The position numbers and the translations under genes are program-made. From assembly GCA_002104905.1 (NCBI GenBank), contig MCFE01000692.1:1-44552 (forward strand): a stretch of DNA of 44,552 bases. The letters run 5' to 3'. The notes beneath the pieces are model-generated. The model had not been told where the DNA came from and made no database searches. It saw nothing but the letters and a program-made list of their open reading frames with translations. The stretch comes from Basidiobolus meristosporus CBS 931.73 (taxonomy: Eukaryota > Fungi > Basidiobolomycota). This document shows, piece after piece, positions 6,350 through 44,360 of the stretch. Within the stretch, counting starts at the first letter, position 1, and each line of letters begins with the position of its first letter.

Positions 6350-9228
6350 CTCCCACTCAGCTAAATGCTCATACTGACTAGTCCTAATTTTGACCAAAGG
6401 TATTCAAACTTCTCTCTAGCTAATGGCTTGGTAAATATGCCTGCAATCATTTCATCTGAAGGACAGTAAACTAAGCTAGCTAAGTTATTCTCTATAGCCT
6501 GATGTATTGAATGATGTCTAATATGTATGTGCTTAGTTCTAGCATGAGAAGTTGGATTTCTACCTAATTGTATACATCCTTGATTATCTTGAAATCAAGT
6601 AATAGGTGTTTTTTGACATAGGCCTAAATCTGCAAAAAGCTTTCTTAACCACATTGCTTCTTTTGTAGGCTCACAGGCTGCCATATACTCTGCCTCTGTA
6701 ATGGAAAGTGCAATGGTTAGTTGCTTTCTTGAATTCCACAATATTGCTCCTTTACAGTAAAGAAAGGTGTATCCTGTAGTAGATCTTCTGACTTCCAAAT
6801 TTTGTCCTCAATGAGCATCAGAGTATCCCACAAGATCCTGCTCTAAATCCTTATAAGTGTATCTTAAGCAGATATCAGCAGTTTTTTTTAGGTATCTAAA
6901 AATCCACTTAACTGCTGCAATATGATCAGATCCATATTTCTGATTATGCTGGCTGATAACTCCCACTGAATATGAGATATCTGGATGCATTTCCAGCACT
7001 AAGCCCACTTGATTTGGTTGAGTTTTGACCAAGTTAAGGTTTGTCTCCATTGGGGTAGCTGCCAGTTAAAAGTCTTCCATTTGGTACTTCTTTAGTATAT
7101 CTTGAATATACTTGGATTGGCTTAGGGTGATAGTCTGGGTACTTTTGTCTATGGAGAACTTTATCCTAAAGTAGTAACTGTGTTCTCCTAGATTGGACAT
7201 CTTGAGCTCTTTAGACAAGCTGGATTTAGTCTCTTCCAATGTATTGAGGTTATTGGTGGCTATAATAAGATCATCCACATATCAAGCTAGTTGAACTGGA
7301 TTTGCTCTATCTGGTTTATAGTATATTCCATAGTCAGCATTACTCCTTTTGAAACTCAAAGATTCCAAATAAGAATCTATCATGCAATTCCAGGCTCTTG
7401 GTGATTGTTTGAGAACATGTAGAGACTTTTTAAGCATGCAGACCAAATGGTGGTTATCTTGGTCAACAAACCCATCAGGCTGGTCCATGTACATGTCCTC
7501 ATCAAGTTTTCTATTCAAAAAAGCAGTTTTTGCATCTGTTTGATGTATAAAAAACTTATATTTGGCTGCAATAGCCAATATTAATCTAATGGAACTAAGC
7601 TTGGCCACTGGTGCAAAGGTCTCAGCATAGTCAGGTCCTTCTGTCTGAGAGTATCCTTTGGCAGCAAGTCTTGCTTTGTATCTTTCATTTGAACTATCAG
7701 CCTTGTATCTTGTCCTGAAGACTCATCTGCATTCAATGGATTTTGGTTGATTGGTAATTTGACTAAGTCCCAAGTTTGATTTTCCATTAGGGCCTGACAT
7801 TACTCAGTCATTGCAGATCTCCAAAACTTCATCTGAGGGCTATTTAGGGCCCCCTTTACAGTCTGGGGCTCATCAATATGGACTGAATAGGCATAAGCTA
7901 AGTTTGTACCCTCATTAATATAGTAATTTGGGCTATTTCTGGTCTGGTTGGATCTCTGGGCATTTGATATCAGAATGATTACATACGGGATATTCCTGGG
8001 CACTGATTCAGGCTGAACCATGGTTGTAGAGTCCTCTGGAGTGACAATGTTTTCATTGTTTTGCTCTGATTTAATCCTGACTATTGGCAGACTTGGCTTC
8101 TCTGCTTTTGTATTGTAGAGTCTGTATGCTTTACTTTCATTGCAGTAGCCCAAGAATATGCATTTTACACTTTTTGGCTCAAATTTTGACTGATTTCCAG
8201 GCAGTTTCTTGGCATATGCTGTACACCCAACTATTCTTAGATCTTCTGCACTTGGTCTGTATCCATACCATGCTTCAACTGGAGTAGAATCACAAAGTAC
8301 TCTGTTATAACTCCTATTCTTAAGGTATACAGCTGTGGCAACAGATTCTGCCCAAAAATCATAGGATAATTTTTGATCATGAATCATAGATATTGCCATA
8401 TTGATAATTGATCTGTTTGCACATTGTGCTACTCCATTTTGCTGTGGGGAGTATGATACAGTTGTCTCTTGCTTTATCCCATGAGTTTTGCAGAAGTGGA
8501 TGAAGAGTTTTGAAGTATATTCTCCACCATTGTCTGAGCGTATTCTCTTTTTGGGTATCTTCTTTGTTGGTTATCATGGCTTATTAAAGCATTTTCTTCT
8601 TCCTTCTTATTAGCATTTGATTTTCTTAATTCTTCATCCAGGAGCCTTCCATATACTTAATCTAAGGTCAAATCCTCAGTTCTGTACTCTAGGGCTGATA
8701 CAAGGCCCTGAAACTTGTCTGTCAGGCTAATCAGGATGGTAACTATCAAATCCTCATCAGTAGTTGGTACACCTACAGATTCTATCACATTCACCAGCAG
8801 GGTAATTCTGTTATTTAGATTTTTCATTTCTTCTCCTGGCTGCATCTTTGTAGTAAAGAATTTTTGTCTCAGATACATTTTCTTAGCAGCTGAACATGAC
8901 TGGTAGGTGTCTTCTAATGCCTTCCAGGCATTCTTTGCCACTTTTGCTCTTGGGCATTGAATTAGCAATTTGTCTTTAACATTGAGGCAAATGCAGTTGA
9001 AGGCACTTTGTTCTTTCTTCTGGTACTTTAAGGCTTGCTCTCCCACATTTTTAGGAGGGCATTCTTCTCCCATGACAATATCCCAAAGGCCTCATTCTTG
9101 TAGCAGCATCTTCATCTTTACCTTCTGCACTTGGTAGTTAGATCCATCCAACCTTTTCAGCAGAGGGAGAAATTCCAGTAATAGCAGTAGTAGACATTGC
9201 AGAGAGTGACAGCTTGGGGCTCATAACC

Positions 9229-14952: not shown

Positions 14953-17900
14953 TTACTCGCCGAGGTTTTGGTGTTGAACCATGGTGAAGTATTTCTTCTT
15001 CATAGCCATCAGCTCCTGATGACTCCCTTCCTCGAGGATTCTCCCTCCTTCAAAGACGAAGATTCGATCGGCGTTCTGTATGGTGGAAAGTCTGTGTGCC
15101 ACAGCAATGGTAGTTCGTCCAGATGCAGCCTGCAACAGTAGGTTTAATGACAGAAACTTGAGGCAGTATTTGATGGATTCCGCTTACCTTGTTCAGAGCA
15201 CTCTGCACCAACTTCTCACTATGTGAATCGAGAGCCGACGTGGCCTCATCTAGCAAAAGAATCTGCGAGCTGTTGGTCAATTAGTCCTTCAAGCAATCAT
15301 ATGACCCAACCTACCTTGGGATCCCGGATTAATGCCCGGGCAATTGCTATGCGTTGCCTCTGGCCTCCACTAAATTGGGAGCCCTTGGTTCCACACTCGG
15401 TATCATAGCCATTTGGCAAAGACATGACATAGTCGTGAATGTTGGCTTGTTTGCAAACCCTTTCGACATCCTCTTGCGCAATATCGTCACGATCAGTGCC
15501 AAGCAAAACATTGAAGCGAATGCTACCCTGGTACAATACTGGCTCTTGACTAACAAGAGCGATTCGGCTTCGATGTGCACGGATATCGTGGGTGCGAATA
15601 TCCTCGTCATCAACGACCACTTGTCCACTGAGGGGGTCGTAAAATCTGGTTCGAGAGAACGCCCTGGTGAATCCATAGCCCGCATTGCTTCCCAAAAATT
15701 TCGCTTACCTTTCGATTAATGAGATGACCGTACTCTTCCCACACCCACTCTCACCCACGAAGGCGCAAAACTGGCCTGGTTTTATCTATTTGTCGTGTCG
15801 TTAGTTAGTACCAGCCTTGAAATCACGCAATACTCGGAAACGAACCGTTATGCTAAGCCCCTGGAGGACTGGGGTCTCTGGGCGTGACGGGTACCGGAAA
15901 TGAACATCCTTCAAAGTGATTGCGCCCTTGGTCTCGATGCCCTTGGTTTGGATGACTGCCGTTGGCTGGCTGTCGATCTGGGGCTTTTGGTCAAGAAGCT
16001 GGAACACATTTCCAGCCGCGATCTTGGCCTTGGTTAGATCGGGTGCCAGAGAGAACATCTGGCCAGATGCTTGCGCACTGAACAGAAGGGCTGGAAGCAC
16101 GATGAAAAACTCCGTCGAGGTATATTCCCCCCTGCTAATCAACTGAGAGCCCCACCTTTTGAATTAGAAAGTGCGTTGAGAAGTCGTCCTTGACAAATAG
16201 CATTCGGTCAGCACATACCAATACGCCAGAGAATAGATAAGATAGGATATGCTGTAGCCAAGCGCAAGCCAGAAGTTACCCGTCATGATCGACCGCAGGC
16301 TGTCGCGATACGGCCCTTCCAAGCTTTCGTGGTACAGCCGGCAAACATCACTCTCGCGGGTAAGAGCCACAACAGTCTGGATCGCGCCAATTGCCTCACT
16401 GGCCAACGCTGCAGACTTCACGTATGCGGTTTGATGGCGTTGCTAAAGGGGCAATTTATGAGCTTGAACGACCTCAGATCCAGCCAGACAATCCCCGAAA
16501 CTTACATGGAACAGGGCCACAATCCGAACACGTAGGAACCCGGAAGCCAACATCACGGGCACAGCGGCCAGCACAACAATGGCAATCTTCCATGCTACCA
16601 CGTGGGCAAGCGTGATCCCGGCAATCAAATTCGTAATGATCGAAAAGACGGTGCCTATAACGACACCAGTAAGACCGCCCATGTAATTCGCATCGGTGTT
16701 GATCATGGAGATCAAGGTCCCCGTGGAGTGCGCCTCGTCGTCAAACCATGCCATATCCTGGCTTACAATCGATCTGCGTGTGTAGGGGTCAGCAATCGAT
16801 CGGCTGGGAGATCAGATTCATATGGAGTGTACCTGAATGACATGCTGCGGATTCTCCATAGTAGTCGTTCCGAAACCCAGCCGAAGGCGCTTCCGTTGAT
16901 GGAATAAGCAAAGAGCACGACCACGGCAATCATGAAAAACCCTAGATCCGTATGAAATGAGTACTGAGTTCAAGAAACCTCGATGGTCGTGCACTCACAG
17001 AAGCTGTAGAAATCCACGTCGTGACGCAGCTGTGTTGGGTTTTCGGTTTGGCTGAGCGCCTTGATCATCTGCGCAAAGAGCACTGCCTCCACAGAATAGA
17101 CCCCACCGATGATGATCGACGCTAAGTCATGGTATGATTAGTAACGGGCCTTGGAATAATGCCGTTCTCCTCGCTTACTTATAACCCCAGCAAGAACAAA
17201 TAGTGCTTCCGGTCGGCTAGTAGCCATCATGCGCTTGATAATAGTGGATGTACCGAACTGTCGCGGGGTCTCTGTCTCTTTGACTGGAGTCAATGAAACT
17301 GATTCATCCGCCATATAAGACTTCTCCGAGGTAACTCCTGATTTGTGGTCGACGATAAACTCTCCTTTTTCTCGTGGATACTGCGTTGCTGCTTTTTCGG
17401 TGAGGACAAGCTCCTCATCAGTGGTATCAGAATCCAAAGCTTCATAGGAGAATCGTTGTGTTTCTACCAATTGGTAGTAGGCAGATTGGCGAGCAATAAG
17501 CTCGTCATGTGACCCTTGTTCTATCACTTTACCTTCAGCCCTGTGAACGTTCAGAATAAACAGTTGAGTACGAGTTCTTCACTGATGGTTGAGTAGCTCA
17601 AGGCAATACTCACATAACCACAATATTGTCGGCCTTTCTTATTGTCGTCAGCCGATGGGCGATGATGATGGTGGTTCGATCCTTGGTTGCATGCTCCAGA
17701 GCATCTTGGATGAGGCGTTCACTTTGTGTATCTAGTGCGGATGTAGCCTTGGTCTACGTCAGATCGATCGATTCGACACCAACGTGGCGGGATGTCCTTA
17801 CCTCATCTAACAGCAAAACCGTTGGATCGGCAACCATAGCTCTTGCCAGTGCTATTCGCTGCTTTTGCCCACCAGATAGCAATAGGCCCCCCTCACCCAC

Positions 17901-19788
17901 AATGGTATTATAGCCCATTGGTAGCTTGGATATAAAGGTATGAGCATTTGCCTGGCGGGCGGCCACTACACAGAGCTCCTCGATTTTGTCCCGCGATTCC
18001 TGATTCCGCTTACTATGTAACAATCCATGGGCAATATTGTCCATGATCGAGGTATTGAAAAGAACAGGAGTTTGCATAACCAAGCTCATTTGGCAACGAA
18101 GCCAATGGATATTCAAGTCCTTGATGTTGATACCATCAAGATAAATGTCACCTTCGGTTGGGTCGTAGAAACGCTCTAGGAGACTCACTTTGGGGGTTTT
18201 AACGAACCGTTAGTCTTGCCATATATATCAACCATACAGATACAAGGGTTACCGATTGTCGATTTCCCAGATCCAGAAACACCCACTATGGCCGTGGTCT
18301 TTCCACAGGGTACATCCAAGTCGATTCCTTTAAGCACTTTGATATCAGGACGACTAGGATAACAAAAAGAGACTTGACGAAACTCTATGGTCCCTTGGCA
18401 TTCGGTAGGTTTTACTCCTTCACTAGACGAGCTATCGATTGGCGAAACGCGATCGATAGTCTGAAATAGCTTCTGCCCAGCCCCCGAGGCCAACGAGAAA
18501 GTCTGCAGAAAGGGGGAAAACTGGCCAATAACGAAGGAACCTAAAATAGCAGAAGTATAAGCACAAGTGGCCAATGGCGTAATAAGCAGACTTCCCACAT
18601 ACTATCTAAAACCAGAAAAATCACTGTATAAACGGTGCCTGCGCCTTCCAGTGAACTGGATACAATGAGTCTAGACCCTTCCCAAAACGCCAAGGCATTA
18701 GCGGAATAGGCAACGAAGAATATCCCACCAAGCATAAGCGCGCCTGCGATGGCCTTGAGAAGGCCTTGTCGCTGAGCTAATGTTAAATAGTGATCGTAAA
18801 GCGCCGATAGCCGATCTTGCGAATTGAATGCCTGTGCAACACGGACATTGGCAAACACCTCCTCCGCTAACGTGCTGGCCTTCGAATGCTGGTCTGAAAC
18901 ACGAGCGGTGTATTTTGAGATAACAAACGAGCCGCCCACCATGACAACAATGAAAACAGGTACAACGGAAAACATGATTCCGGTCAGAGTGGCGTTCTTC
19001 ACGAAGCCTACAGTGAAGGCAGCCAGAAAGTAGGAGATCGATTGAATGAAGATCCCCACCTTCTCTGATGTGCCGTTCTGTATGGTTTGGGTGTCACTGG
19101 TGATACGACTGGATACCTACGACGAAGGGGTCACGTTATTCATCTTGGAAGAATTGCCATTGATTGGTCTGACAACTACCTCGCCTGCACCAAGTTTGTT
19201 GAAGTACGCGATGTTTTGTCGCAATACTGCTCGGAGATAGTTTTCACGGAGTTTCCGTGTCAGCCGCTCCCCTATCAGACTCCAGCATACAGTGTATGTG
19301 TATGTCAACAAAAAGTAGCCAATTGCGACATAAATAAGCTTCAACACCTTGTCGTTGACAGCCTCCTTGAAGATACTGGCTTGGTATGCAGAGAGGGGAG
19401 AGGACGTTTCGGAAAACTGCCTTGAGAAATCATTGATCAGGTCTCCGAACAATATACCAATAAGCGGAAGTGGAACACCAGCACCTAGAGCACATACGAC
19501 TCCAACTATGAGGAGGAGTTTGTCGAACGCTGTCGAGTATCTGTAGAGGCTAAAGTATCCGGCTCTTCTCGAGGGACTTCCTGTGGCGAGAGTATCTTCA
19601 TTCTGCTCCTCTACAAATCGACGCTGTTGCTCCCCCAGAATAGAGATAGGTTCTATGATTACTTTATCTAACTGTTTTGACTGCTCCGGGTTTCGGGCAT
19701 TTGGCTCGTTAAGGGATATCCCGAGTTCGTCATTATTCTTGCACGACTTTTCAGCTTCCGACATTCCATCTCCGGACTGAGTATGCAT
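14953..19788 (-). CDS. Full-length ABCB (MDR/P-glycoprotein-type) transporter, multi-exon; candidate siderophore exporter
   Basis: TMD-NBD-TMD-NBD layout. NBD1 has GVSGSGKST and [14 protein letters not shown]; NBD2 has [40 protein letters not shown] and [10 protein letters not shown]. The start may be 19788 or 19764 and exon boundaries were not fully resolved. The siderophore role is inferred from context only. Confidence 0.9.
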
Positions 19789-19968: not shown

Positions 19969-20058
19969 TTATCTGATTCAGTACTCCAAGTAGTGTACCA
20001 CAACTCTAAATATAATTCGCAGATCATGATCTGATAAATTGAGAAAGTAATCAGATAA
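19969..20058. promoter_or_regulatory. Three ATCWGATAA iron-GATA-repressor-type sites upstream of the ABCB gene
   Basis: TTATCTGAT 19969-19977, ATCTGATAA 20029-20037 and ATCAGATAA 20050-20058, plus near-match ATCTGATAT 19877-19885. These match the SreA/Fep1/Urbs1-class consensus. Confidence 0.75.
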
Positions 20059-21509
20059 CCTGATGTACATTGGTTCGGGAATTTACCACCATATTAAGAA
20101 GTCTGTTGGAATGTTTATTTCAGTTTTATATTAGGTGGATTTTTTTGGGATATAACGCCTGAGGCGCCATTTCGAATCAAGGTCATGTAATTTGTGCTGG
20201 ATGGAACAAATAGTAATCAGCAAAATAAAGGATTTCCCCGAAAGGATGCGTGCGGTTAAACACTCCTATATATAGGCAGGTTTGATATTGTTTTAGATCA
20301 AACTTCGTTGGAGTAAATCGTTGGAAAGCATATTCACTGACTAAGCAAAGCTTCTGATCCCTAGCAAATGCAGTTACAGCTTACTTGGCCATAAGCCGGT
20401 GGATATGTAACAAGGCTATCGTAAACTAGATTAATACCTGCTCTCGTTGAGCCCCATTATCATTTTGCGGACCTTACACCTTTGAAGCACATTTCGATGC
20501 TCCAACTTCTTTCAGCTAAAGCAGTAACCAGAATAATGAAACAGGGCAAAGGGATCACCGATCACTGCCCTATCCAGACCTCACCAAATACAACAATGCA
20601 TTAAGAATTGATACCTGATGATCACTATAATGCTTATTAAAGATAATCAAACGTCGGACATATACCTGTATGTCTCGCAATCCGGGAAATACTCTACTAC
20701 GAACGGTGTTTAGCTTGACACGAATAGATATTCTAGGGTCCAGGGTGCTATATACTACAGGGCTATGTGCAGTTGGTCTATTCATGTAGCCCGTATTTAC
20801 ATTGGATATGAGAAGGGTTTGTAAATGGATGGGATGTTAATTTTCTACACAAGCTCTCACAGTCAAATAAACCCTGGCATGGTTTAGTTAATAACTCCTA
20901 TCTGTACACATTAAAAATGGTTAGAATCTCATCTCTGTACTACCCCTCTCGGTCTCCTAAGGAGGGAGGAAAATTTTTCAGCTTAAGCTCATTTGATAAG
21001 GAAGTATTGCACCGCCAATTTTTTAGAGTTGGATCACACAATTGGGAATCTCTACAACACATCGAGGAGATTCTGTTAACGAGAGACGAACTAGCTAGTG
21101 AGCCCTCCTCAATAATACAGCTGTAGAAGGATCTGCAGTGGTATCTTTACAAGCATGGCCACGAAAGAGAGAATACCGATTCCTTAACCATATGCTAATG
21201 AGGTAACCAATAGGACACCGTGTACCCTGACCCTTCACAGAAATGAAGATCTCGGATAAACCCAGAAGAAAATAGGCATGAGTTTCTCCCATGTAGAAGG
21301 CAAGTTTTGGCTGCTGAGTGAAGGCATCATCAAGTGTATTGTTAAAATAGAATGCATATCTCTTCTAAAAAGCGACCAAAGCCATTACGACATTTCCATT
21401 CAATGCCTAGCGCCTGGATCGCCTTGGTTGGTAGAGTACCATCTTGGTGAGCTCTGATTGGGTAATTATGCATAGCGATATATTAGCTCTGAAGGCTCAT
21501 AGGAACTCA

Positions 21510-21847
21510 TTATCAGATTTGCTACGAACAATGTTAATTCATGATCGTGAAAACAATTTCATATAGATTCATTTATGGGAAACTTAGAATGGGGCTAGAG
21601 AATCTGATAGCCACCACACTATTCAAATTAGGGTGCACGGCATTTTAGGAAATCGTTTTCAAGCTGCTACCACCTAGCTGCATGTCACCATTATCTACTC
21701 GGCCTTGGAGTAACCTATCCGGAAATAGCACTTCATTGGTACGCTGTCGGCATGATCCGCTGCCCCCAAAAGTTCCAAGATATAAAAACTTCGTCCTCCT
21801 TGAACAGCGATATTCATTCCTACTATTTCTTCTAACGGATCTGATAA
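21510..21847. promoter_or_regulatory. ATCWGATAA sites and TATA box upstream of the monooxygenase-acyltransferase fusion
   Basis: TTATCAGAT 21510-21518, near-match ATCTGATAG 21602-21610, TATAAAA at ~21781 and ATCTGATAA 21839-21847 just before the ATG. Confidence 0.7.
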
Positions 21848-21859
21848 CCTTATTCAGCA

Positions 21860-24130
21860 ATGGCAGCAGGACACGAAAGCGAGTACACTAACGAGTACGA
21901 TATCTTGTCAGTAGGCTTTGGACCAGCGGGGCTCTCCATCGCTATTGCGCTTACCGAGGCTGAAGGAGCTTCGCGAAATGGCAAACTCTCCCAGGAACAT
22001 CTACGGGTTTGCTTTATTGAGAAGCAGGATTCCTTTGTTTGGCACGAGGGAATGCTTCTGGAAGATTCCAAGATGCAAATCAGTTTCCTCAAAGACCTGG
22101 CCTCGATGCGTGACCCTAGGAGTTACTTCACCTTCCTTAATTATCTTCATCAGAAGCAGAGACTACTCTCATTTTCGAACTTGGGCTCCTTCTACCCCTA
22201 CCGCTCCGAGTATAATGACTATATGGCATGGGCTGCTTCCCATTTTGCCGATGTCTGTCATTTCGGAGAGCAAGTTGTTTCCATTGAGCCCGTCGTTACT
22301 GAGCGAACTCAGGTGGTAGAACGCTTGAAGGTTACATCAAAAAGGCTGACTGACGGAGCTAGTATTGTGCGAATCACCAAGAACGTGATTGTAGCAGTTG
22401 GAGGACAGCCTCACATCCCTGAGCTGATTGCTGAATATAATGCAAAGGACCTCCAGAACTACAATCGGATTATCCACTCCTCCCAGTATGCATATCGTGT
22501 ATCCAAGTCGCTCCCAGATAATGATTGTGCTTATTCCATTGCTGTGGTTGGAGGTGGCCAAAGTGGAGCCGAGATATTCTATGATTTGACCTCTCGTTAT
22601 CCCAATTCACGCGTGTCCCTTGTTCTACGCGATACGGCCTTACGCCCATCAGATGATAGCCCCTTCGTGAACGAAATATTCGATCCCTCATTCACTGACA
22701 CCTTCTATAACATGTCCCCTGAAAAGCGCCAGGCCACGTTGAAGCGCGAAAAAGCCACCAACTACTCAGTAGTTCGTCTCGAGCTGATTGAAAGGATATA
22801 CGGACTTTTGTACAAGCAGAAGCTTCCTGGACACTCGGAGCAACATAAGATCCTCTGCTCTCGCAAGGTTCTTTCGGTCATTCCTTCGGAGGACAGTGTT
22901 ACTTTGAAGCTGGTAAGCACCGATGAAACCGGACCAAAGGAGAACATTGGCGTTGAAACCGAGCATAAGTTTGATGCGGTCTTCTTTGCAACTGGCTACG
23001 AAAGACACCTCCACAAAGAGATTCTCGGCCCCATGTCCCCTTACTTATGCACTGATGAGAATTCCCAAATGTTGCTTCAAAGAGATTACCGACTTCAAAC
23101 CAACTCCAATTGTCGTGCTGGTATTTACCTCCAAGGGTGTTGTGAAAGTACCCATGGACTTAGCGACTCCCTTCTTTCTGTGCTCCCCATCAGAGGTGCT
23201 GAGGTCGTACAGTCTATGATCGACAATGACCCCAGCCTTCGCAGCGTAGTCTCCGCCGGATCTGCCCTGGAAAAGGAGTTATCATCCGCCTTCCAAAAGA
23301 GTGGAACCGATCGCAAGGCTGAGAAAACTACCGAGGAAAACGCACAGAATTCCACTCTTCCATCCCCACCATCCACAAGACCACTCACACCTACTGGTGA
23401 TGAGCTTTGGGAATGGGTTGAGGATGTCGACTCGGACAACGCTAGCTTCGGGTGGTTGCGCTACTCTGGCCCTTCTATGGATTTCAACAAACATATTGAT
23501 GGTCATCCTCCTCGCGTAGCCAGACCTCCAGCAGGCCAATTGCTATACCGCCGCTATATTCCCGCACTTGGGCAAAGCTTATCTCTCAGAGTGGCTAGCC
23601 TAGAGCAGGATATTGACCATTTCCACCGTTGGATGAATGACCCTCGAGTTTCTAAGTTTTGGGGTGAAGATGGCCCAATTGAGCATCAAACGAAGTATCT
23701 TTCCGGTTTGCTGGAGGATAGCCATGCCATGCCGGTGATTGGGCTCTTTGATGATGAATGCTTTGCATACTTCGAGATCTATTGGTCTAAGGAAGATAGA
23801 CTTGGTAAATACTACGAAGCTGAGAACTTCGACCGTGGAATTCACATGCTGGTTGGTGAGCAGAAGTTCCGTGGTCCCCATCGTGTGGAAGCATGGATCC
23901 CATCCTTGGCCCACTACATTCTCTTGGACGACGCACGCACTCAAAGAGTAGTTTCGGAGCCAAGAGCAGACAACGATAAAATGATTGGATATCTTCAGAA
24001 GTACGGCTTCGAGAGACACAATGATATTCAGCTACCACACAAGCGTGCCGCGTTGATGATTTTGCCTCGTGAGCATTTTGCCGAGACCAAAATCGGATCC
24101 AAACTATTCCGCTCAGCCGAGTCAAACTAG
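21860..24130 (+). CDS. Bifunctional L-ornithine N5-monooxygenase (SidA/PvdA-type) fused to an IucB/AlcB-type N-hydroxy-amino-acid acyltransferase; intronless, 756 aa
   Basis: The N-terminal part has VGFGPAGL (FAD), MQISFLKDL, VVGGGQSGAE (NADPH), RPSDDSPFVNEIF, ATNYSVV, FATGY and HGLSDSLLS. After a S/P-rich linker, the C-terminal part has RWMNDPRV..FW, YFEIYWSKED, DRGIHMLVGEQKFRG, EPRADN and PHKRA. Confidence 0.92.
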   Translation: MAAGHESEYTNEYDILSVGFGPAGLSIAIALTEAEGASRNGKLSQEHLRVCFIEKQDSFVWHEGMLLEDSKMQISFLKDLASMRDPRSYFTFLNYLHQKQRLLSFSNLGSFYPYRSEYNDYMAWAASHFADVCHFGEQVVSIEPVVTERTQVVERLKVTSKRLTDGASIVRITKNVIVAVGGQPHIPELIAEYNAKDLQNYNRIIHSSQYAYRVSKSLPDNDCAYSIAVVGGGQSGAEIFYDLTSRYPNSRVSLVLRDTALRPSDDSPFVNEIFDPSFTDTFYNMSPEKRQATLKREKATNYSVVRLELIERIYGLLYKQKLPGHSEQHKILCSRKVLSVIPSEDSVTLKLVSTDETGPKENIGVETEHKFDAVFFATGYERHLHKEILGPMSPYLCTDENSQMLLQRDYRLQTNSNCRAGIYLQGCCESTHGLSDSLLSVLPIRGAEVVQSMIDNDPSLRSVVSAGSALEKELSSAFQKSGTDRKAEKTTEENAQNSTLPSPPSTRPLTPTGDELWEWVEDVDSDNASFGWLRYSGPSMDFNKHIDGHPPRVARPPAGQLLYRRYIPALGQSLSLRVASLEQDIDHFHRWMNDPRVSKFWGEDGPIEHQTKYLSGLLEDSHAMPVIGLFDDECFAYFEIYWSKEDRLGKYYEAENFDRGIHMLVGEQKFRGPHRVEAWIPSLAHYILLDDARTQRVVSEPRADNDKMIGYLQKYGFERHNDIQLPHKRAALMILPREHFAETKIGSKLFRSAESN

Positions 24131-25043
24131 CTCGCCGAAGACTGAAGCATAGCCATGACCCATGCACTATACAACCTAGCACTCGTTTTCATAGAGTATT
24201 CAGTGATCATAATTATTGACAAATCCTATATTCAAATAAAGCCTAACCGATGTATATTTTACACCTGCTGCCCTTGAACATGAATTTCATCTCAGCTGTG
24301 GTACGCGATGCAGCCAAACAAATGCTTCCGTGTCTTCAATGATGGCGCGCTGCATACCTGGCATTCCACTACGATGTTTCGCTGATGCAGCCGTGGTCTG
24401 CGTTGTTGTTCCTGTGTGATCTAGAGTAATACAACCACTGCAATCATTATCTAAATCCCGCCACTCAAAATCAGATAAGTCCAATCATTTGATCTGATAT
24501 TCGGGTGTGAAACATTACACTAGATACAGCAGTGAGACGGATCTCAACACCAAAGATCTATTCGCTCCTACATGCACAAATATAGACTATACTTCCTGTT
24601 GTGCCTCAGATATATAGTGCTTGTAGAATCTGATTACTCCAGCTGGTTGAATAGGACAGCACGTTGGGCCAAGCTAGAGTTAGCCGTGTTGATGCAGAAT
24701 CTGACTCACGGGATTGTTGATAATTTTAATTCCATATATCCAAGTGTTGCTCAGATTAGCAAGTCCCCAGCAGGACCATCTCCGTATATAGGCTACAAAT
24801 AAAACCCCAAACAACGTCGGTATTGGAAGAGAGCAAGTCCATTTGTGCTGGGATTCTTGGCAGCATGCAGACCCGAGGTTGAACAAGGACTGGTATGGAA
24901 AGTAACGCACACGTCTGTATGGTACAGTCACCGTTTTATTATTGAATACCCATTCAGTGTTGAATAATACATGCATATACTAGCGCAAACAAACATCGAT
25001 CCCACGAAACAATCCAACGCTATGTAGTTCTATAGGCCCCTTT

Positions 25044-26373
25044 TCAATGTGCTGAATGGGACAGTTCGTAGCCGAAAAACCGCCAGAACTTTGCAACGCC
25101 AACGTCCTTTTTGAATATGCTAGTAATGAAGTCACCAACGACAATGAAGCCAATCTGTGCAACGCCTCCGGTACGCCCAACGCTAAACGAGATCATTTGC
25201 ATTGGGGCCCGGAATCTGCTCAGTTTCTGCATTGGCTTACCGACTTGCTGAAGAATGAGCTTGAATATATTATCTGCAGCAATTGTTCCTTGTCTATATG
25301 CAATCCCAGCCAACTTTTCACTCCACATGTTACAGACATCTCCAGCTGCAAAGATATGGGCGAGCTCGGAAGACTCCAGTTGCATAGTAGGTAGAACTTT
25401 GATGAGCCGGCTCTTCTCCTCGAGCACGCCTCCGTACTTGCCGTCCAAGTTTTTCAGGAACGAGGAATTGGGATCGGCGCCGAAGCAAAGGAACTAAATA
25501 CAAAAGAGATGGTTAGAAACAATATATGTCCCAGCATTGATAAAGCCAACAAACCTGAATATCAGTTTCAAATACCCTCCCACTAGTTGAGGTCCAGGCC
25601 CTTCTGGTGTAATGTGTCTTGGTCAAGTCCTCTTGTGAGAATATGAGGCGTTCATTAAATACCACCTCTACTCCACGTTTAGTCAAGCTCTTGTGTGCTT
25701 GAGATCTGCATCTATCCGAAACGTTTCCAGGTAGAAGTTTATCACGGCTGTGAATAAGGGTAACCTTTTTCTCCGGAAAATCATCTGCGATCTCGCCGGC
25801 AAGTTCAATTCCATTGCATCCTCCACCAACAATTAAGACATCCTTCGCTCCCTTAATTGCCTCGATTGTTTCTTCTGCAATTCGAATGCCGGTCTTCTTG
25901 TTTAATGATTGGGTATCAATGGGTGTTGGGTACGACAACCCGGAAGAGACCATCAGATAGTCAAATGCTACGGTTTCTCCAGATTCAAGGATCACCTCGT
26001 TTTTACGAACATCTTTGACAGAGGCGTTGACGACTTTGTGCTTCTTATCCTTGAAGAGCCTGTCGCGGGGGATCCACAGTTTCCTGGCAAATCCATTCTC
26101 GACCATCGCCCGGAACGCACCAATGATGAAATAGAACTCTTCTTTCTCATCGATCATCGTGATCTCCACGTTGTAGCTGCCGCATTTTTTCTCGAGCAAT
26201 TTGGCAGCACCAATTCCACCAAACGATGCACCTATGATAACGATTTTGATGGGTGCCTTCAATGCCATCAGTTCCGCGATTTTTTTGCTCGACGCTATCC
26301 AGTAATAGCTCACAACAAGTCCAACACCTGTGGCAATAGAAGCGATTATAGAGTTCATGGTTTGATGATCCAT
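25044..26373 (-). CDS. AIF/AMID (FSP1-like) FAD-dependent pyridine nucleotide-disulfide oxidoreductase with N-terminal membrane anchor
   Basis: IVIIGASFGG, DYLMVSSG, VLIVGGGCNGIELAGEI and IFAAGD. Hydrophobic N-terminus IIASIATGVGLVVSYYWI. One intron at 25494-25554. Confidence 0.88.
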
Positions 26374-26491
26374 TCCATTCCTTGATTTTAAAGCTAATTT
26401 ATGGCATCTGATCGGGAAAATGGCTATGTATTATCCCATGAAGTGCTGCATGGACATGCACAAGGTTGTAATCAGGTGTTACATGAAAAGG

Positions 26492-26649
26492 ATCTGATAA
26501 ATGTGTACAGAAAATATACAGCTATTTGATATAAGAAGATGCACTAATGGTTTGACTCAATATAAGATTTATTATGACTCCTTTTATATAGGTTTTTTTC
26601 GTTATCAGATCTATGATGGTTATGACAAATATTACTTTCGTTATCAGAT
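26492..26649. promoter_or_regulatory. Three ATCWGATAA sites upstream of the oxidoreductase
   Basis: ATCTGATAA 26492-26500, TTATCAGAT 26602-26610 and TTATCAGAT 26641-26649. A minus-strand TATATAAAAG lies at 26581-26590. Confidence 0.75.
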
Positions 26650-38100: not shown

Positions 38101-39243
38101 GGGAGACAGTTGCCAACAGGTGAAATCTTTATTTCAGTTGAAACAAAGAAGCCAGCACTACTGTTGTAGCTTTGATACAAGAGTGTGTAGCTGCGGGGAA
38201 TTTGTAGGTAAGTTAATAAGAAGTGATGATAGTTCTTCAGTGCTCAAGACACTGTTCAGTGGGAAGGGGGGTAGCAAGAGAGGTAAGAATGACTTGTGAA
38301 CAACATTAATGAGGGGAATGTGATAAGGATTGATATTCATCATAAAGGGAGTGTGCTGCTGCAGATATTGCTGCCAAAGGTCTGTCAAGTATTTCAGGTA
38401 GGCCAGCTTGGGTTTTTCTAACTGCAGAATATAGTGTGCAAACTTCTTAACTTCAGGATCTCCAAGTATAGTTCTCCAGCAGGAGCCAGGTGTAGTGTGA
38501 TGTGTTCTCTTCCAGGCCTTAATCAGTGGGTTGTTGCAGTGGTGAAGTCTGAGATATAATCTGGTTCTAAGGTAGAGAAGTCTGATCTTATAGGGCATAA
38601 ACCCAAAAGCACCAAGAATAGCATGTCTGTAGGGGCATTCAGGCAAATGAGGCACCAAGGAGGTAATGCACCATACTGCAAACTTGTCAAGATTAGTGCA
38701 GTCTCTAGAAGTAAGAGAGAGAAGTGGTAAGCCAGACTCCAGGACAGGGAAGACAAACTGCTTGAGTAGAAGGAGGCAGCTGGGAGCTGAAGTTGTTGGA
38801 GGAGTAACAGCCAGTAGCTTGTGGAGTGCCTGTCTTGCCAGGATAATTCTCTTCTTCAGGTGTGCTCCAGAGTCTAGTCCAGTAGGAAGGAAAGGAAAGC
38901 CAAGATATGTAGCAGAAACCTGAGCAGGTAGAGTGGAGTTCTCCAAGTTGATGGGAGAGCCCAAAGGTACTGTCTTTGCAATGGAAAGCTGGAGATTATT
39001 CTTCTGCAGATACTGGTGGATGGTCTGGGAGTCTTGTTGCACATTGGAGGAGGATATTCTGATGTCATCAGCAAAGAGAGTAACCAGGCAGTCAGCTGAG
39101 AGTCTTGGGAAATCATTCAGGAAGATGGCAAACAGTATAGGACCAAGCACAGAGCCTTGAATCACTCCATTAGGAGCTGAGAACACAGCTGATTGCTCAC
39201 TTGGGTGAAGAATCCTTGCTTGTGGATCTAGAAACAGAGACCT
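38101..39243 (-). mobile_element. 5'-truncated copy of the telomeric non-LTR retrotransposon (3' ~1.15 kb)
   Basis: Highly similar to 40666-41808. Encodes GVIQGSVLGP and LFADDI through the stop. Preceded by TTAGGG and followed by TTAGGTTAGGG. Confidence 0.93.
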
Positions 39244-39254
39244 TTAGGTTAGGG

Positions 39255-39748
39255 GAGGAAAGTCACCAAGTGGTGAAATCTTTATTTACTTATGACAAGT
39301 ATACAAAGAAGCCAAGTTAATCTGAAGTAATTCCTAGAAAGCTAGGTCTGAGAGATATCTACCGGGTAAGCCAGGCCTGAGAGTTGAGAAGCTGAGTGGT
39401 ACTATATTTCCTAGTTAGCTAGGTCTGAGAGAGGTTTCCTGGAAAGCCAGGCCTGAGAAGTGAGAATCTGAGTATATCTGAGGTGAGTTGTACTGATTTG
39501 CGGTAGCATGTTTGTGGCCAGAATGGCCAGTAGACTGGGGGAACTGAGGGGTATTTCTGGGCGATCACTGGCCAAATTTACTAGGCAAATCTGACCAATT
39601 AGCATTTCAAGGATTTCAGCCAATCAGAGCCTTTACTTTGCCCGATGGTTAATCAAGCCATCTCCCAATGAGCACACGTCAATTTATTGATCAAATTTTG
39701 CTGGATCCAGGATTTGAACCCACAACCATGGGTATGGGAGGGTTAGGG
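39255..39748 (-). mobile_element. Telomeric SINE-like element, copy 1 (ends at its internal telomeric repeat)
   Basis: Homologous to 40132-40627. B-box GGTTCAAATCC at 39710-39720 (minus) and 3' hairpin at 39263-39276. Confidence 0.8.
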
Positions 39749-39782
39749 GAGGGAAAGTCACCAAGGTAGGTGAAATCTTTAT
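39749..39782 (-). mobile_element. 34-bp 3'-terminal stub of the SINE/LINE (hairpin only)
   Basis: gagggaaagtcaccaaggtaggtgaaatctttat, directly capped by TTAGGG repeats. Confidence 0.7.
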
Positions 39783-39824
39783 AGGGTTAGGGTTAGGGTT
39801 AGGGTTAGGGTTAGGGGGGGGGGG
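39782..39824 (+). repeat. Interstitial telomeric tract, ~6 TTAGGG units plus a G run
   Basis: Read directly. Confidence 0.95.
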
Positions 39825-40116
39825 AGGAAAGTCACCAAGTGGTGAAATCTTTATTTACTTATGACAAGTATCTAAAGAAGCCAAGTTAATCTGAAGTAAT
39901 TCCTAGAAAGCTAGGTCTGAGAGATATCTTCCTGGTAAGCCAGGTCTGAGAGTTGAGAAGCTGATTGGTACTATATTTCCTAGTTAGCTAGGTCTGAGAG
40001 AGGTTTCCTGGAAAGCCAGGCCTGAGAAGTGAGAATCTGAATATATCTGAGCTAAGTTATACTGGTTTGCGGTAGCTGAATTGTGGGCGGAATGGCCAGT
40101 AGACTAGGGGAACTGA
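39817..40116 (-). mobile_element. Telomeric SINE-like element, copy 2 (5'-truncated, ~300 bp)
   Basis: Homologous to the first 300 bp of 40132-40651 and capped by GGGTTAGGGTTAGGG (40117-40131). Confidence 0.8.
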
Positions 40117-40131
40117 GGGTTAGGGTTAGGG

Positions 40132-40651
40132 GGGAGGAAAGTCACCAAGTGGTGAAATCTTTATTTACTTATGACAAGTATCTAAAGAAGCCAAGTTAAT
40201 CTGAAGTTATTCCTAGAAAGCTAGGTCTGAGAGATATCTTCCTGGTAAGCCAGGTCTGAGAGTTGAGAAGCTGAGTGGTACTATATTTCCTAGTTAGCTA
40301 GGTCTGAGAGAGGTTTCCTGGAAAGCCAGGCCTGAGAAGTGAGAATCTGAATATATCTGAGCTAAGGTATACTGGTTTGCAGTAGCTGAATTGTGGCCGG
40401 AATGGCCAGTAGACTGGGGGAACTGAGATGAATTTCTGGGCAATCACTGGCCAAATTTACTAGGCAAATCTGACCAATTAGCATTTCAAGGATTTCAGCC
40501 AATCAGAGCCTCTACTTTGCCCGATGGTTGATCAAGCCATCTCCCAATGAGCACACATCAATTTATTGATCAAATTTTGCTGGATCCAGGATTTGAACCC
40601 ACAACCATGGCTATGGAAGGGTTAGGGATAACCACAAGGCTAAGTGTTCTT
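40132..40651 (-). mobile_element. Telomeric SINE-like element, apparently full length (~520 bp), with tRNA-like Pol III head
   Basis: The minus strand begins aagaacactTAGCCTTGTGGTtatCCCTAACCCttccatagccatggttgtgGGTTCAAATCCtgg. The A-box-like motif is at 40631-40642 and the B-box at 40589-40599, at tRNA-like spacing. The 3' end is shared with the LINE. Flanked by TTAGGG repeats on both sides, with no long ORF. Confidence 0.75.
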
Positions 40652-40722
40652 GGTTAGGGTTAGGGGGGAGACAGTCACCAACAGGTGAAATCTTTATTTC
40701 AGTTGAAACAAAGAAGCCAGCG

Positions 40723-43491
40723 CTACTGTTGTAGCTTTGATACAAGAGTGTATAGCTGAGGGGAATTTGTAGGTAAGTTAATAAGAAGTGATGATAGTTC
40801 TTCAGTGCTCAAGACACTGTTCAGTGGGAAGGGGGGTAGCAAGAGAGGTAAGAATGACTTGTGAACAACATTAATGAGGGGAATGTGATAAGGATTGATA
40901 TTCATCATAAAGGGAGTGTGCTGCTGCAGATATTGCTGCCAAAGGTCTGTCAAGTACTTCAGGTAGGCCAGCTTGGGTTTTTCTGACTGCAGAATATAGT
41001 GAGCAAACTTCTTGACTTCAGGATCTCCAAGTATAGTTCTCCAGCAGGAGTCAGGTGTTGTGTGGTGTGTTCTCTTCCAGGCCTTAATCAGTGGGTTGTT
41101 GCAGTTGTGAAGTCTGAGGTATAATCTGGTTCTAAGGTAGAGAAGTCTGATTTTATAGGGCATAAACCCAAAAGCACCAAGAATAGCATGTCTGTAGGGG
41201 CATTCAGGCAAATGAGGCACCAAGGAGGTAATGCACCATACTGCAAACTTGTCAAGCTTAGTGCAGTCTCTAGAAGTAAGAGAGAGAAGTGGTAAGCCAA
41301 ATTCCAGGACAGGGAGGACAAACTGCTTGAGTAGAAGGAGGCAGCTGGGAGCTGAAGTTGTAGGAGGAGTAACAGCCAGTAGCTTGTGGAGTGCCTGTCT
41401 TGCCAGGATAATTCTCTTCTTCAGGTGTGCTCCAGAGTCTAGTCCAGTAGGAAGGAAAGGAAAGCCAAGATATGTAGCAGAAACCTGAGCAGGTAGAGTG
41501 GAGTTCTCCAAGTTGATGGGAGAGCCCAAAGGTACTGTCTTTGCAATGGAAAGCTGGAGATTATTCTTCTGCAGATACTGGTGGATGGTCTGGGAGTCTT
41601 GTTGCACATTGGAGGAGGATATTCTGATGTCATCAGCAAAGAGAGTAACCAGGCAGTCAGCTGAGAGTCTTGGGAAATTATTCAGGAAGATGGCAAACAG
41701 TATAGGACCAAGCACAGAGCCTTGAACCACTCCATTAGGAACTGAGAAAACAGCTGATTGCTCACTTGGGTGCAGAATTCTTGCTTGTGGATCCAGAAAC
41801 AGAGACCTGACAAGGAGGGTGAGAGAGGTACTGGAGAAGCATTGCAACTTGGACCAAAGCAGATTTCTGTCAACTGAATCAAAGGCCTTAGTAATATCAA
41901 ACAGAACAGAGGGATACTTGCACTGGAGAGAGTGATCTTGGCTAAGTATGACTGCATATTCCAAGGAGAGGCCAGGAACAAAGCCAAACTGTGCAGGATG
42001 AAACTTGAGAGAGTCAGAGTAGAGCTCCTGAGCAAGCAGAAGCTCAAACACCTTTCTGCAGGTGGGCAGCAGAGATATTGGCCTGTAGGAGCTAGGATCC
42101 AGGTGCTTTCCTTTACCCTTGTACAGTGGCAGAACATTTGCAAAGGACCATTCCTCAGGAGTAGAAAGCTGGGCTGAGCATTGCTGAAACAGTGGAAGCA
42201 GAAGTGCCGACATGGCCTTGGTACTAGTCTTCAGAAGCTCATAGGAGATTGTGTCCACACCTGGAGCAGTAGAGTTGGGAAGCCTCTTGAGCACATTATG
42301 GATTCTCCTTTGATCAAGTGCAAGTGGGATGGGCAGAGTCTTGAAGTCAGGATGAAAGCCAGGAGTTGAGTACTGCTTTGTAGAGAAGAAGATGTTAGCC
42401 AGCTGTTCTGTTGAAGGTAACTTCCTGGAAGAGGGCCTCATTGCCCTGTAGAGTCTTGATACTGTTCTTGTTATAGAGTTGGAAGATTGCAGAGGCAAGG
42501 AACTCATAATATGATCCCAGAGCTGAGTATGCAGAGTGTGGTGAATTGCCTTGGAGTGGTGTATTGCTGTCAGGAGGAGTTTCTCTGTTTTTGGGTTAGG
42601 GAAGCTCAGGTAGCTTTGTTGCAGGGCTGAAACAATGGATTCCCATTTTCTTGAGGTACCAGCAGTAGTCTTGCATGGCAGTGAGAGGGAGGCAGACACC
42701 AGAATAAGATGCTTCACAAAGAGCCAGGCAAAGTTGAGATCATCTGGCTGAGAAAGTAGCAAACTGGCAAGCTTCAAGTAGTTCCCAAAGTCTTTCTTCT
42801 GATTCTTGGTAGCTTTGTGGGTGAGCACAGTAAGTTTTGGCAGCTTCTTCTTCACAACTGGTTGCATAGAAAGGGACCAGGCTGGGTGGTCAGAGGCTCT
42901 CAAGGATCCTAGCTCAGCTCCAGAGAATTGCTTAACTTCATTCACAAAGTAGAGGGCAGCAGCAGAAGGGCAGATCCAGTCAACACATCTTTTCTCAGAT
43001 TGAGCACCTAGTGCTAGCAGGTGGCTTTCTCTCAGGAAGTTCAGTAGGAATGTAGACCTTGGCTTCATTCTTGCAGTCAGAGTAGTCTTGTTCTCAGGAT
43101 GGGGAATGTTGAGATCTCCAAGCAAGATAACAGGTGTTGATATAGATTGTTGGTATTGCTGAACCTTTTGGCATATAACTTGCACTTCCTGAAGGGCTAG
43201 ACTTGGAGGCAGATAGCAGAGCACCAGACTGATAGTTGGCAACTGGAGAGCAGCACAGTAAGGGGAGTAAAGAGGAACACAGAGCTGAGGAGTATTGATG
43301 GTAGAAGAGATGAAGCAGATAGAGGAGGTATTCTTTGTTCTAGGAGTAGAAAAGCAATATAGATTAGTCAAAAGTATAGAGGGTAGCTGGACATCAATCA
43401 AACACAGGAGGGAAAATCTTGAAAGAAGTCTCTCTAGAGTTGGTCTTGATGGCTGTATGCTGTTGCAGTTAAGCAACAGAACTTCAGGTAG
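40723..43491 (-). CDS. LINE ORF2: apurinic-like endonuclease plus reverse transcriptase, uninterrupted
   Basis: EN motifs are LLLNCNSI, CYLPP, ILLGDLN, VDW and SDH. RT motifs are APGVDTI, YRPISLL, QFGF, FDITKAFDSV, GVVQGSVLGP, LFADDI and YLG. There is no ATG before the EN GDLN motif. Confidence 0.93.
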   Translation of the reverse strand, partial: LPEVLLLNCNSIQPSRPTLERLLSRFSLLCLIDVQLPSILLTNLYCFSTPRTKNTSSICFISSTINTPQLCVPLYSPYCAALQLPTISLVLCYLPPSLALQEVQVICQKVQQYQQSISTPVILLGDLNIPHPENKTTLTARMKPRSTFLLNFLRESHLLALGAQSEKRCVDWICPSAAALYFVNEVKQFSGAELGSLRASDHPAWSLSMQPVVKKKLPKLTVLTHKATKNQKKDFGNYLKLASLLLSQPDDLNFAWLFVKHLILVSASLSLPCKTTAGTSRKWESIVSALQQSYLSFPNPKTEKLLLTAIHHSKAIHHTLHTQLWDHIMSSLPLQSSNSITRTVSRLYRAMRPSSRKLPSTEQLANIFFSTKQYSTPGFHPDFKTLPIPLALDQRRIHNVLKRLPNSTAPGVDTISYELLKTSTKAMSALLLPLFQQCSAQLSTPEEWSFANVLPLYKGKGKHLDPSSYRPISLLPTCRKVFELLLAQELYSDSLKFHPAQFGFVPGLSLEYAVILSQDHSLQCKYPSVLFDITKAFDSVDRNLLWSKLQCFSSTSLTLLVRSLFLDPQARILHPSEQSAVFSVPNGVVQGSVLGPILFAIFLNNFPRLSADCLVTLFADDIRISSSNVQQDSQTIHQYLQKNNLQLSIAKTVPLGSPINLENSTLPAQVSATYLGFPFLPTGLDSGAHLKKRIILARQALHKLLAVTPPTTSAPSCLLLLKQFVLPVLEFGLPLLSLTSRDCTKLDKFAVWCITSLVPHLPECPYRHAILGAFGFMPYKIRLLYLRTRLYLRLHNCNNPLIKAWKRTHHTTPDSCWRTILGDPEVKKFAHYILQSEKPKLAYLKYLTDLWQQYLQQHTPFMMNINPYHIPLINVVHKSFLPLLLPPFPLNSVLSTEELSSLLINLPTNSPQLYTLVSKLQQ

Positions 43492-44360
43492 TCAGGCAGA
43501 GGTTGTAGCTTCTTCAGAGGCAGCATTAACAATGTGACCTGCAGAGTCCCAGAGCTCTTCAAATGGTGCATCACTTAAGTCAGCAAGGAGGGAAATGGCA
43601 TGATTCTTGAGGAAGTATGCCACATCATAGGAGGGGGCTTGTCTCTTGATGGCAGCAAAGAAAGACAGAATGGCAACATGGGCTGGAGGCTTGTTGAACA
43701 GTAGAGAGTCAGAGGATTCAGATTCTTCAGGCACTATCTTGAAGTCAGTTTTCAGCCAGTTAAGGTTCTTCTCCACAAAGGCAACAAATGGGTCAGCAAT
43801 GTTTTGGTCTAGGATAACCTCCAGAATCTTCCCTTTTCTCCAGGCCAGGTTGACAATTCTTGAGAGCTGAATATTGCATGCCTTGAGTGCTTTCCTGATG
43901 TTGGAAATGGGGGTCCAAGGAACTTGCTTCAAGTACACCACAGTCCAGGTAGAAGCTGGTGGTAGGTTTGCTGGGGGCTTGTAAGTCCTTCTGTGTTGCA
44001 ATGGAGCTGCAGTAGTCAGATTGGAGTCCACATTCTCAGTAGAAGGTTTTCTTGATGTGTCTTGCTGAATAGTACTGGAGCTGGATGTGCTGATAATTCT
44101 TGCTAGAACCTTGCCTGCATAAGTCTGAGGTATAGCTGAGGTGACTGTAGAGGTGGTGGCAGCTGGTGCAGGTGGAGAGGCAGAGACTGAAGCAGGAACT
44201 GAGGTCACCTGGGAGAAGGCAGTAGAAGCAGATTTTCTGGGAGGAACAGAGTTCACTATCCAGTTGTTCTGTAAAACACTGGAGTAGCTTTTCTGTGGAA
44301 CAGGATCTTGCTCTTGAACAGGAACAGAAGCAGGAGGCTGGGGCTGAGCAGTAGTGGTAA
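43492..44360 (-). CDS. LINE ORF1 (gag-like), 5'-truncated
   Basis: The frame stays open from the telomere junction (LTTTAQPQPPASVPVQEQDPVPQKSYSSVLQNNWIVNSVPP...) to TGA at 43494-43492. It is P/S/T-rich, then has a folded segment (WTVVYLKQVPWTPISNIRKAL). Assignment rests on position rather than a recognised domain. Confidence 0.75.

Follow-up and report, generated by a model that had tools for sequence, protein, structure and literature searches.

Genes and ATCWGATAA sites of the locus

The scaffold MCFE01000692.1 of Basidiobolus meristosporus CBS 931.73, analyzed here over its entire length of 44,552 bp (hereafter, the window), contains three neighboring genes associated with clusters of the 9-mer ATCWGATAA, the word attributed to iron-sensing GATA repressors in other fungi. 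They encode an ABCB-type full ATP-binding cassette (ABC) transporter, a fused siderophore-precursor enzyme, and an FSP1/AIFM2-type flavoreductase. The transporter gene (14953..19788, minus strand) consists of multiple exons, with the annotated start at 19788 and the last exon open reading frame (ORF) ending at 14953. Its annotated product of 1329 aa has two pairs of the ABC_membrane and ABC_tran domains, and we consider it to be probably a siderophore exporter. The transporter gene and the fusion gene (21860..24130, plus strand) are transcribed divergently and share a promoter region. The latter gene is a single uninterrupted ORF of 756 aa that combines an L-ornithine N5-monooxygenase of the SidA type (PF13434, E-value 3.6e-106, residues 13–381) with a SidL/IucB-type N-acyltransferase of the Acetyltransf_8 family (PF13523, E-value 1.3e-54, residues 581–725); hence, both enzymes that mark a hydroxamate-siderophore cluster reside in one polypeptide. 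The domain searches bear out the ABCB gene and the fusion gene of an earlier note on this DNA.

The public annotation divides the 756-aa ORF into two gene models, a 454-aa hydroxylase and a 217-aa acetyltransferase. Annotated fusions of this type include a B. meristosporus paralog (735 aa), one B. ranarum gene (745 aa), and many chytrid genes; in Spizellomyces punctatus (KQ257457.1, 1–12100), the fusion gene is located head-to-head with a gene for a 4914-aa multi-module nonribosomal peptide synthetase (NRPS), the two forming a compact hydroxamate siderophore cluster. Among the ORFs scanned over the 44.5 kb of the scaffold, there is neither an NRPS nor an NRPS-independent siderophore (NIS) synthetase; nor does the 22-kb stretch retrieved for the paralogous pair of B. 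meristosporus genes described below have such a gene call.

The reductase gene (25044..26358, minus strand) converges with the fusion gene and encodes a protein of 417 aa in two exons, the first at 26358–25555 and the second at 25493–25044 including the stop codon, separated by an intron at 25554–25494. Another in-frame ATG is situated five codons upstream of the start, at 26373.

A search of both strands of the window identified nine perfect matches to ATCWGATAA, at 19969(−), 20029(+), 20050(+), 21510(−), 21839(+), 24470(+), 26492(+), 26602(−), and 26641(−), and no further perfect match in the rest of the 44,552 bp. All nine (9/9) are confined to three intergenic spans that together constitute about 3.6 kb, or approximately 8% of the window. 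In dinucleotide shuffles, the mean number of matches was 1.52 and the maximum was 6, so that none of 100 shuffles reached nine. Five sites are localized in the divergent promoter of the transporter and fusion genes, three precede the reductase gene, and one is situated between the convergent gene ends. The same three spans also contain three matches at eight of nine positions (ATCTGATA; 19877, 21602, and 24492). The number of sites, their coordinates, their absence elsewhere in the window, and their distribution (three before the transporter gene, two before the fusion gene, three before the oxidoreductase gene, and one at 24470) had all been claimed in the earlier note and were reproduced here, including by the measured distances to gene starts.

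On the transporter side, the three sites (19969..20058; one on the minus strand followed by two on the plus strand, the latter at a spacing of 21 bp) are located 181–270 bp upstream of the ATG at 19788. The two sites on the fusion side (21510..21518, minus strand; 21839..21847, plus strand) are located, respectively, 350 and 21 bp upstream of the ATG at 21860, the proximal one being 3′ of a TATA-like box (ATATAAAA; 21780..21787, plus strand). Between them lies the imperfect site ATCTGATAg (21602..21609, plus strand). The three sites upstream of the reductase gene (26492..26649) are 134–291 bp from its ATG at 26358 and, in the orientation of the gene, occupy positions −291 (forward), −252 (forward), and −142 (reverse). 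Finally, the perfect site at 24470 and the imperfect site at 24492 (24470..24499, plus strand) are 22 bp apart within the 913-bp spacer of the convergent fusion and reductase genes. The spacing of this pair is of the same class as that of the 20029/20050 pair; no annotated gene start is nearby, and a 76-codon ORF starts at 24572.

Motif identity and recurrence at related loci

Control of siderophore genes by iron-sensing GATA factors is textbook knowledge for Ascomycota and Basidiomycota. The word ATCWGATAA was derived from SreA-repressed promoters of Aspergillus fumigatus (PMC2610380), and it fits the sites bound in vivo by Urbs1 (at sid1) and by Fep1 (at str1 and fio1-fip1; as cited in PMC2610380). 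According to a 2023 review, SreA recognizes ATCWGATAA through its two zinc fingers (PMC10500206). Repressors of this type have a Cys-rich region with a GATA zinc finger on either side. The assignment of this word to SreA/Fep1/Urbs1-type repressors in the earlier note is thus in agreement with both sources. SreA-like GATA factors have been reported in Rhizopus (PMC12638772), while our search of the literature yielded no SreA orthologue in Zoopagomycota and nothing on Basidiobolus. As for the physiology, B. meristosporus CBS 931.73 has been shown to secrete siderophores and possesses numerous genes for siderophore synthetases, the siderophore metabolism of Basidiobolus being unusually expanded (PMC7466969).

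The locus resembles the A. fumigatus SreA regulon (sidA; the cluster with the ABC transporter Afu3g03430) in that an identical 9-bp word is over-represented in front of genes for making and transporting siderophores and in that ABC transporter genes are included; those inside SreA-repressed siderophore clusters have been listed as possible exporters (PMC2610380). It differs in belonging to an early-diverging lineage, in having the hydroxylase and the acyltransferase in one polypeptide, in the lack of an NRPS on the scaffold, and in the presence of a motif-bearing FSP1-type reductase, whereas the term “oxidoreductase” has zero occurrences in the text of the SreA paper (PMC2610380). Similarly, multiple or paired sites occur upstream of ornithine monooxygenase or iron-uptake genes in the Urbs1/sid1 system of Ustilago maydis and the Fep1 targets (str1, fio1-fip1) of Schizosaccharomyces pombe (PMC2610380). 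For these, binding and repression have been demonstrated, whereas for Basidiobolus we infer them.

For a comparative analysis, we considered about 91.5 kb of Basidiobolus DNA comprising the window, a paralogous transporter/fusion pair of B. meristosporus (L001), two B. ranarum fusion genes (L002 and L003), and the B. ranarum contig containing the reductase orthologue (L010). All 26 ATCWGATAA sites in this DNA (26/26) lie in about 14 kb of spacers upstream of or between the transporter, fusion, and reductase genes, and the remaining 77 kb or so contain none. In particular, all five sites of L001 are located in the 1.8-kb spacer of its head-to-head pair, the other 20 kb being free of them. In B. 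ranarum, each of the two fusion genes (72% and 52% identical) has four sites, all of them upstream. Hence, within the compared Basidiobolus DNA the sites are over-represented in front of iron-acquisition genes relative to other DNA.

An alignment of the four fusion promoters revealed one proximal GATA-site position common to all four (4/4). The imperfect site at 21602 aligns with perfect sites in L001 and L003 and with a match at eight of nine positions in L002, and the TATA-like box is shared by the orthologous fusion promoters of B. meristosporus and B. ranarum. Among the 22 sites of the window, L001, L002, and L003, the base preceding the word is never T (A in 8, G in 9, and C in 5 sites), and the W position is T in 15 and A in 7 sites.

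The reductase orthologue of B. ranarum (P0455; 73% identity over 412 aa) was recovered by an exhaustive search and a cluster listing, the cluster representative being 110 aa long. On its contig, four ATCWGATAA sites were observed against 0.54 expected, all of them upstream of the gene. In the gene orientation, the proximal ones are at −284 (forward), −240 (forward), and −125 (reverse); thus, their order, orientation, and spacing match those in the window, and two of the sites align in register. Outside the coding sequence, the reductase loci of the two species no longer align in BLASTN, and therefore the retained 9-mers do not simply reflect shared ancestry of the whole promoter. The sites are conserved in orthologous promoters of B. 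ranarum, and the recurrence of motif clusters at L001, L002, L003, and L010 provides strong comparative backing for the co-regulation of the exporter, the fusion enzyme, and the reductase that the earlier note had proposed.

Synteny between the reductase and fusion genes in B. ranarum was considered and rejected, as the neighbors on L010 are different and another contig, L011, is a ~90% identical copy of the 3′ part of L010 with its flank. Specifically, the B. ranarum assembly contains two versions of the 3′ portion of the reductase gene with its downstream flank (L010 7010–8208 and L011 1–1335), at approximately 79–90% nucleotide identity, which are explained either by a recent duplication or by haplotype divergence.

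In four other early-diverging fungi (Podochytrium, Mortierella, Mucor, and Syncephalis), the 5–8 kb examined for the FSP1-like homologues contain no ATCWGATAA site. The motif is hence not an old trait of the FSP1-like subfamily, and its link to the reductase is specific to Basidiobolus among the sampled fungi.

The FSP1-type reductase and the remainder of the scaffold

Vertebrate FSP1 (AIFM2) is an NAD(P)H:quinone oxidoreductase that suppresses ferroptosis. The whole-protein analyses of its Basidiobolus relative were performed with the database product P0001, and exon 1 was searched separately. Residues 37–414 of P0001 match the solved structures of FSP1 with the E-value of 4e-47, the next being type II NADH dehydrogenases (NDH-2; 4e-11); the identity to vertebrate FSP1 is 27–30%. 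The AlphaFold model, built on 60 relatives, has the mean predicted local distance difference test score (pLDDT) of 91 and a target-normalized template modeling (TM) score of 0.91–0.92 to human FSP1 (8jsc, 8wik), with NDH-2 and AIF ranking lower. The protein thus has the fold of the FSP1 family, i.e., two Rossmann domains binding FAD and NAD(P)H and a C-terminal domain, with similarity over the full length. Seven residues that are invariant in 60 sequences (G43, G140, G178, G180, E185, G319, and D320) are retained, as is the nearly invariant K396; we take the conserved residues to be equivalent to the catalytic residues of human FSP1. Domain search yielded the Pfam families Pyr_redox_2 and Pyr_redox and neither the SIP (FAD_binding_9) nor the FhuF domain. 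The earlier description of the protein as an AIF/FSP1-like flavoreductase is right, the protein being of the FSP1/AIFM2 type with an N-terminal hydrophobic segment.

This segment (MNSIIASIATGVGLVVSYYWIASSKK) forms part of an N-terminal extension of about 33 residues, in which a 19-residue hydrophobic stretch (residues 4–22, Kyte–Doolittle 1.75) is followed by two lysines. The extension is kept in B. ranarum (Kyte–Doolittle 1.72), and the nearest homologues of other fungi lack it. The N-terminus has no N-myristoylation signal, its place being occupied by the hydrophobic stretch, and a reasonable reading is that the Basidiobolus enzyme is membrane-anchored via this segment in place of the myristoyl anchor of vertebrate FSP1. 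Hence, the similarity to vertebrate FSP1 extends over the full-length match, the fold, both nucleotide-binding glycine motifs, Glu185, Asp320, Lys396, and a predicted membrane tether, whereas the differences are the type of the tether and the presence of iron-repressor-type sites in the promoter. NDH-2 enzymes share the two-Rossmann flavoprotein fold and are membrane-associated quinone reductases as well, at a greater evolutionary distance than FSP1. With the bacterial ferric-siderophore reductases (the SIP/ViuB/YqjH and FhuF types), the analogy concerns solely a possible role, that is, flavin- and NAD(P)H-dependent iron release co-regulated by an iron repressor; the protein families are unrelated. 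A profile word search, an exhaustive search, and inspection of 30 relatives revealed no FSP1-like proteins in Basidiobolus other than P0001, P0455, and the fragment P0335.

The remaining part of the window contains an HSF-like gene, a fibrillarin gene, remains of retroelements, an inverted pair of amidohydrolase genes, a major facilitator superfamily (MFS) gene, and copies of long interspersed nuclear elements (LINEs). The inverted duplication (28257–29630/30593–31966) has arms of 1374 nt that are 99% complementary and 962 nt apart, each with a 455-aa Amidohydro_1 gene (guanine-deaminase-like). Fragments of Copia-type gag, integrase, and reverse transcriptase are located at 7282–9073, and the final 6 kb (38158–44256) are occupied by ORFs of LINE reverse transcriptases with a strong GC skew. 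Thus, the siderophore genes are situated near a retroelement-rich scaffold end.

Regulatory model and possible roles of the reductase

Taken together, these observations make it likely that the nine sites are operators bound by a GATA repressor of the SreA/Fep1/Urbs1 type that senses iron and that the three genes are derepressed jointly at low iron. The sites, their enrichment and conservation, and the protein families are observed, whereas the existence of the repressor, the response to iron, and the direction in which the pump works are inferred. At sufficient iron, the repressor would bind ATCWGATAA and shut the promoters; at iron starvation it would leave, and the transporter, fusion, and reductase genes would come on together. 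The fused hydroxylase/acyltransferase would then make N5-acyl-N5-hydroxyornithine, a building block of hydroxamate siderophores, and the divergently transcribed ABCB pump would probably export the siderophore. The third derepressed gene would supply a membrane-anchored NAD(P)H flavoreductase of the FSP1 type.

Several observations weigh against this model. The site at 21839 is situated 3′ of the TATA-like box and has no counterpart in B. ranarum, and that at 24470 has no obvious target. The B. ranarum reductase gene has unrelated neighbors and is not beside siderophore genes; therefore, the clustering seen in B. meristosporus may be accidental. Finally, 22 kb of the Spizellomyces NRPS/fusion locus contain no ATCWGATAA. 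The motif as an old trait of the fused gene is thus not seen in this fungus, and iron-motif control may be lineage-specific.

A trivial explanation, that the sites are chance matches or repeat copies, might draw on the AT-rich composition of the intergenic DNA in the window. It is refuted by the shuffles, by the differing flanks, and by the recurrence at four related loci, and its probability is negligible: other AT-rich spans of the window (5–11 kb and 32–38 kb) have zero sites, and the flanking sequences differ among all nine sites, which are therefore independent rather than copies of a repeat. Another possibility is that a different GATA factor, e.g., a nitrogen or light regulator, binds these sites, so that the genes would follow the supply of nitrogen or ornithine rather than iron. 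In its favor, a GATA core is recognized by all GATA factors, and ornithine belongs to nitrogen metabolism. However, the plain core HGATAR is enriched about twofold in the site-bearing spans, whereas the extended 9-mer is enriched strongly; hence, the signal resides in the latter, and this extended form is tied to iron repressors (PMC2610380). Since, in addition, the genes carrying the motif at four loci are siderophore genes, we regard control by a different GATA factor as very improbable.

Assuming iron-dependent control, the role of the reductase is less certain. Our leading interpretation, held tentatively, is that the enzyme keeps the chemistry of its family, using NAD(P)H to reduce quinones in the membrane, and acts as an iron-free antioxidant. 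Such an antioxidant would serve when haem- and iron-dependent defenses fall while siderophore-borne iron floods in, and iron-starved A. fumigatus is known to be hypersensitive to oxidative stress (PMC2610380). The main alternative, itself rather unlikely, is that the enzyme, under the same regulation, is an intracellular ferri-siderophore reductase, whose cytosolic catalytic domain, held at the membrane by the anchor, would reduce Fe(III)-hydroxamate with the help of NAD(P)H and FAD, either directly or via a quinone or flavin, and thereby free Fe(II) from imported siderophores. This would be consistent with the location of the gene next to those for siderophore production and transport in B. 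meristosporus, with the iron-motif cluster kept in two species, with the expanded siderophore metabolism of Basidiobolus (PMC7466969), and with the statement of the 2023 review that reductive iron release has not been identified in fungi (PMC10500206), and the Basidiobolus-specific N-terminal anchor, together with motif-free homologues elsewhere, suggests recruitment to a new job. Still, the known substrates of FSP1 are quinones, the enzyme with its Pyr_redox_2 and Pyr_redox domains has no family relation to the known siderophore reductases, and the clustering with siderophore genes is not conserved in B. ranarum. An iron-sparing respiratory bypass, in which the enzyme would be an NADH:quinone oxidoreductase similar to NDH-2 that is induced when iron is low and replaces the Fe-S-rich complex I, seems improbable. 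NDH-2 enzymes provide the closest solved folds after FSP1 (TM 0.66–0.76), FAD is the sole requirement of the enzyme, and a membrane anchor is predicted; on the other hand, by the E-values given above the protein is far closer to FSP1 than to NDH-2, and its N-terminus, as read from the sequence, resembles a hydrophobic anchor and not an amphipathic mitochondrial presequence. The antioxidant role is thus favored over ferri-siderophore reduction and over the bypass because of the family chemistry and because the clustering is not conserved. As to the origin of the enzyme, it is conceivable, if doubtful, that a quinone reductase was recruited in Basidiobolus by gaining both the membrane anchor and the control by the iron repressor.

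The kind of system described here is already known. The present data would extend the iron-GATA operator code, with a conserved promoter architecture, to an early-diverging fungus of the gut, Basidiobolus. What is new is an FSP1-type flavoreductase with a motif cluster that is kept across two species and lacking from homologues in other fungi. In the searched literature, we found no fungal iron regulon or siderophore cluster that includes an FSP1/AIF-type gene, and as far as this literature shows, the apparent placement of such an enzyme under conserved control of the iron-operator type is novel.

The route of siderophore export in fungi is still open according to the 2023 review, and section 6 of the same review lists reductive iron release from siderophores as not identified (PMC10500206); the locus gives one candidate gene for each. 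Since the word clusters recur before the matching genes of B. ranarum, the reductase is a candidate for a role in iron starvation that has so far not been assigned in fungi. If it is indeed an iron-free lipid antioxidant, a ferroptosis-type defense would be linked to iron-starvation signaling in a fungus.

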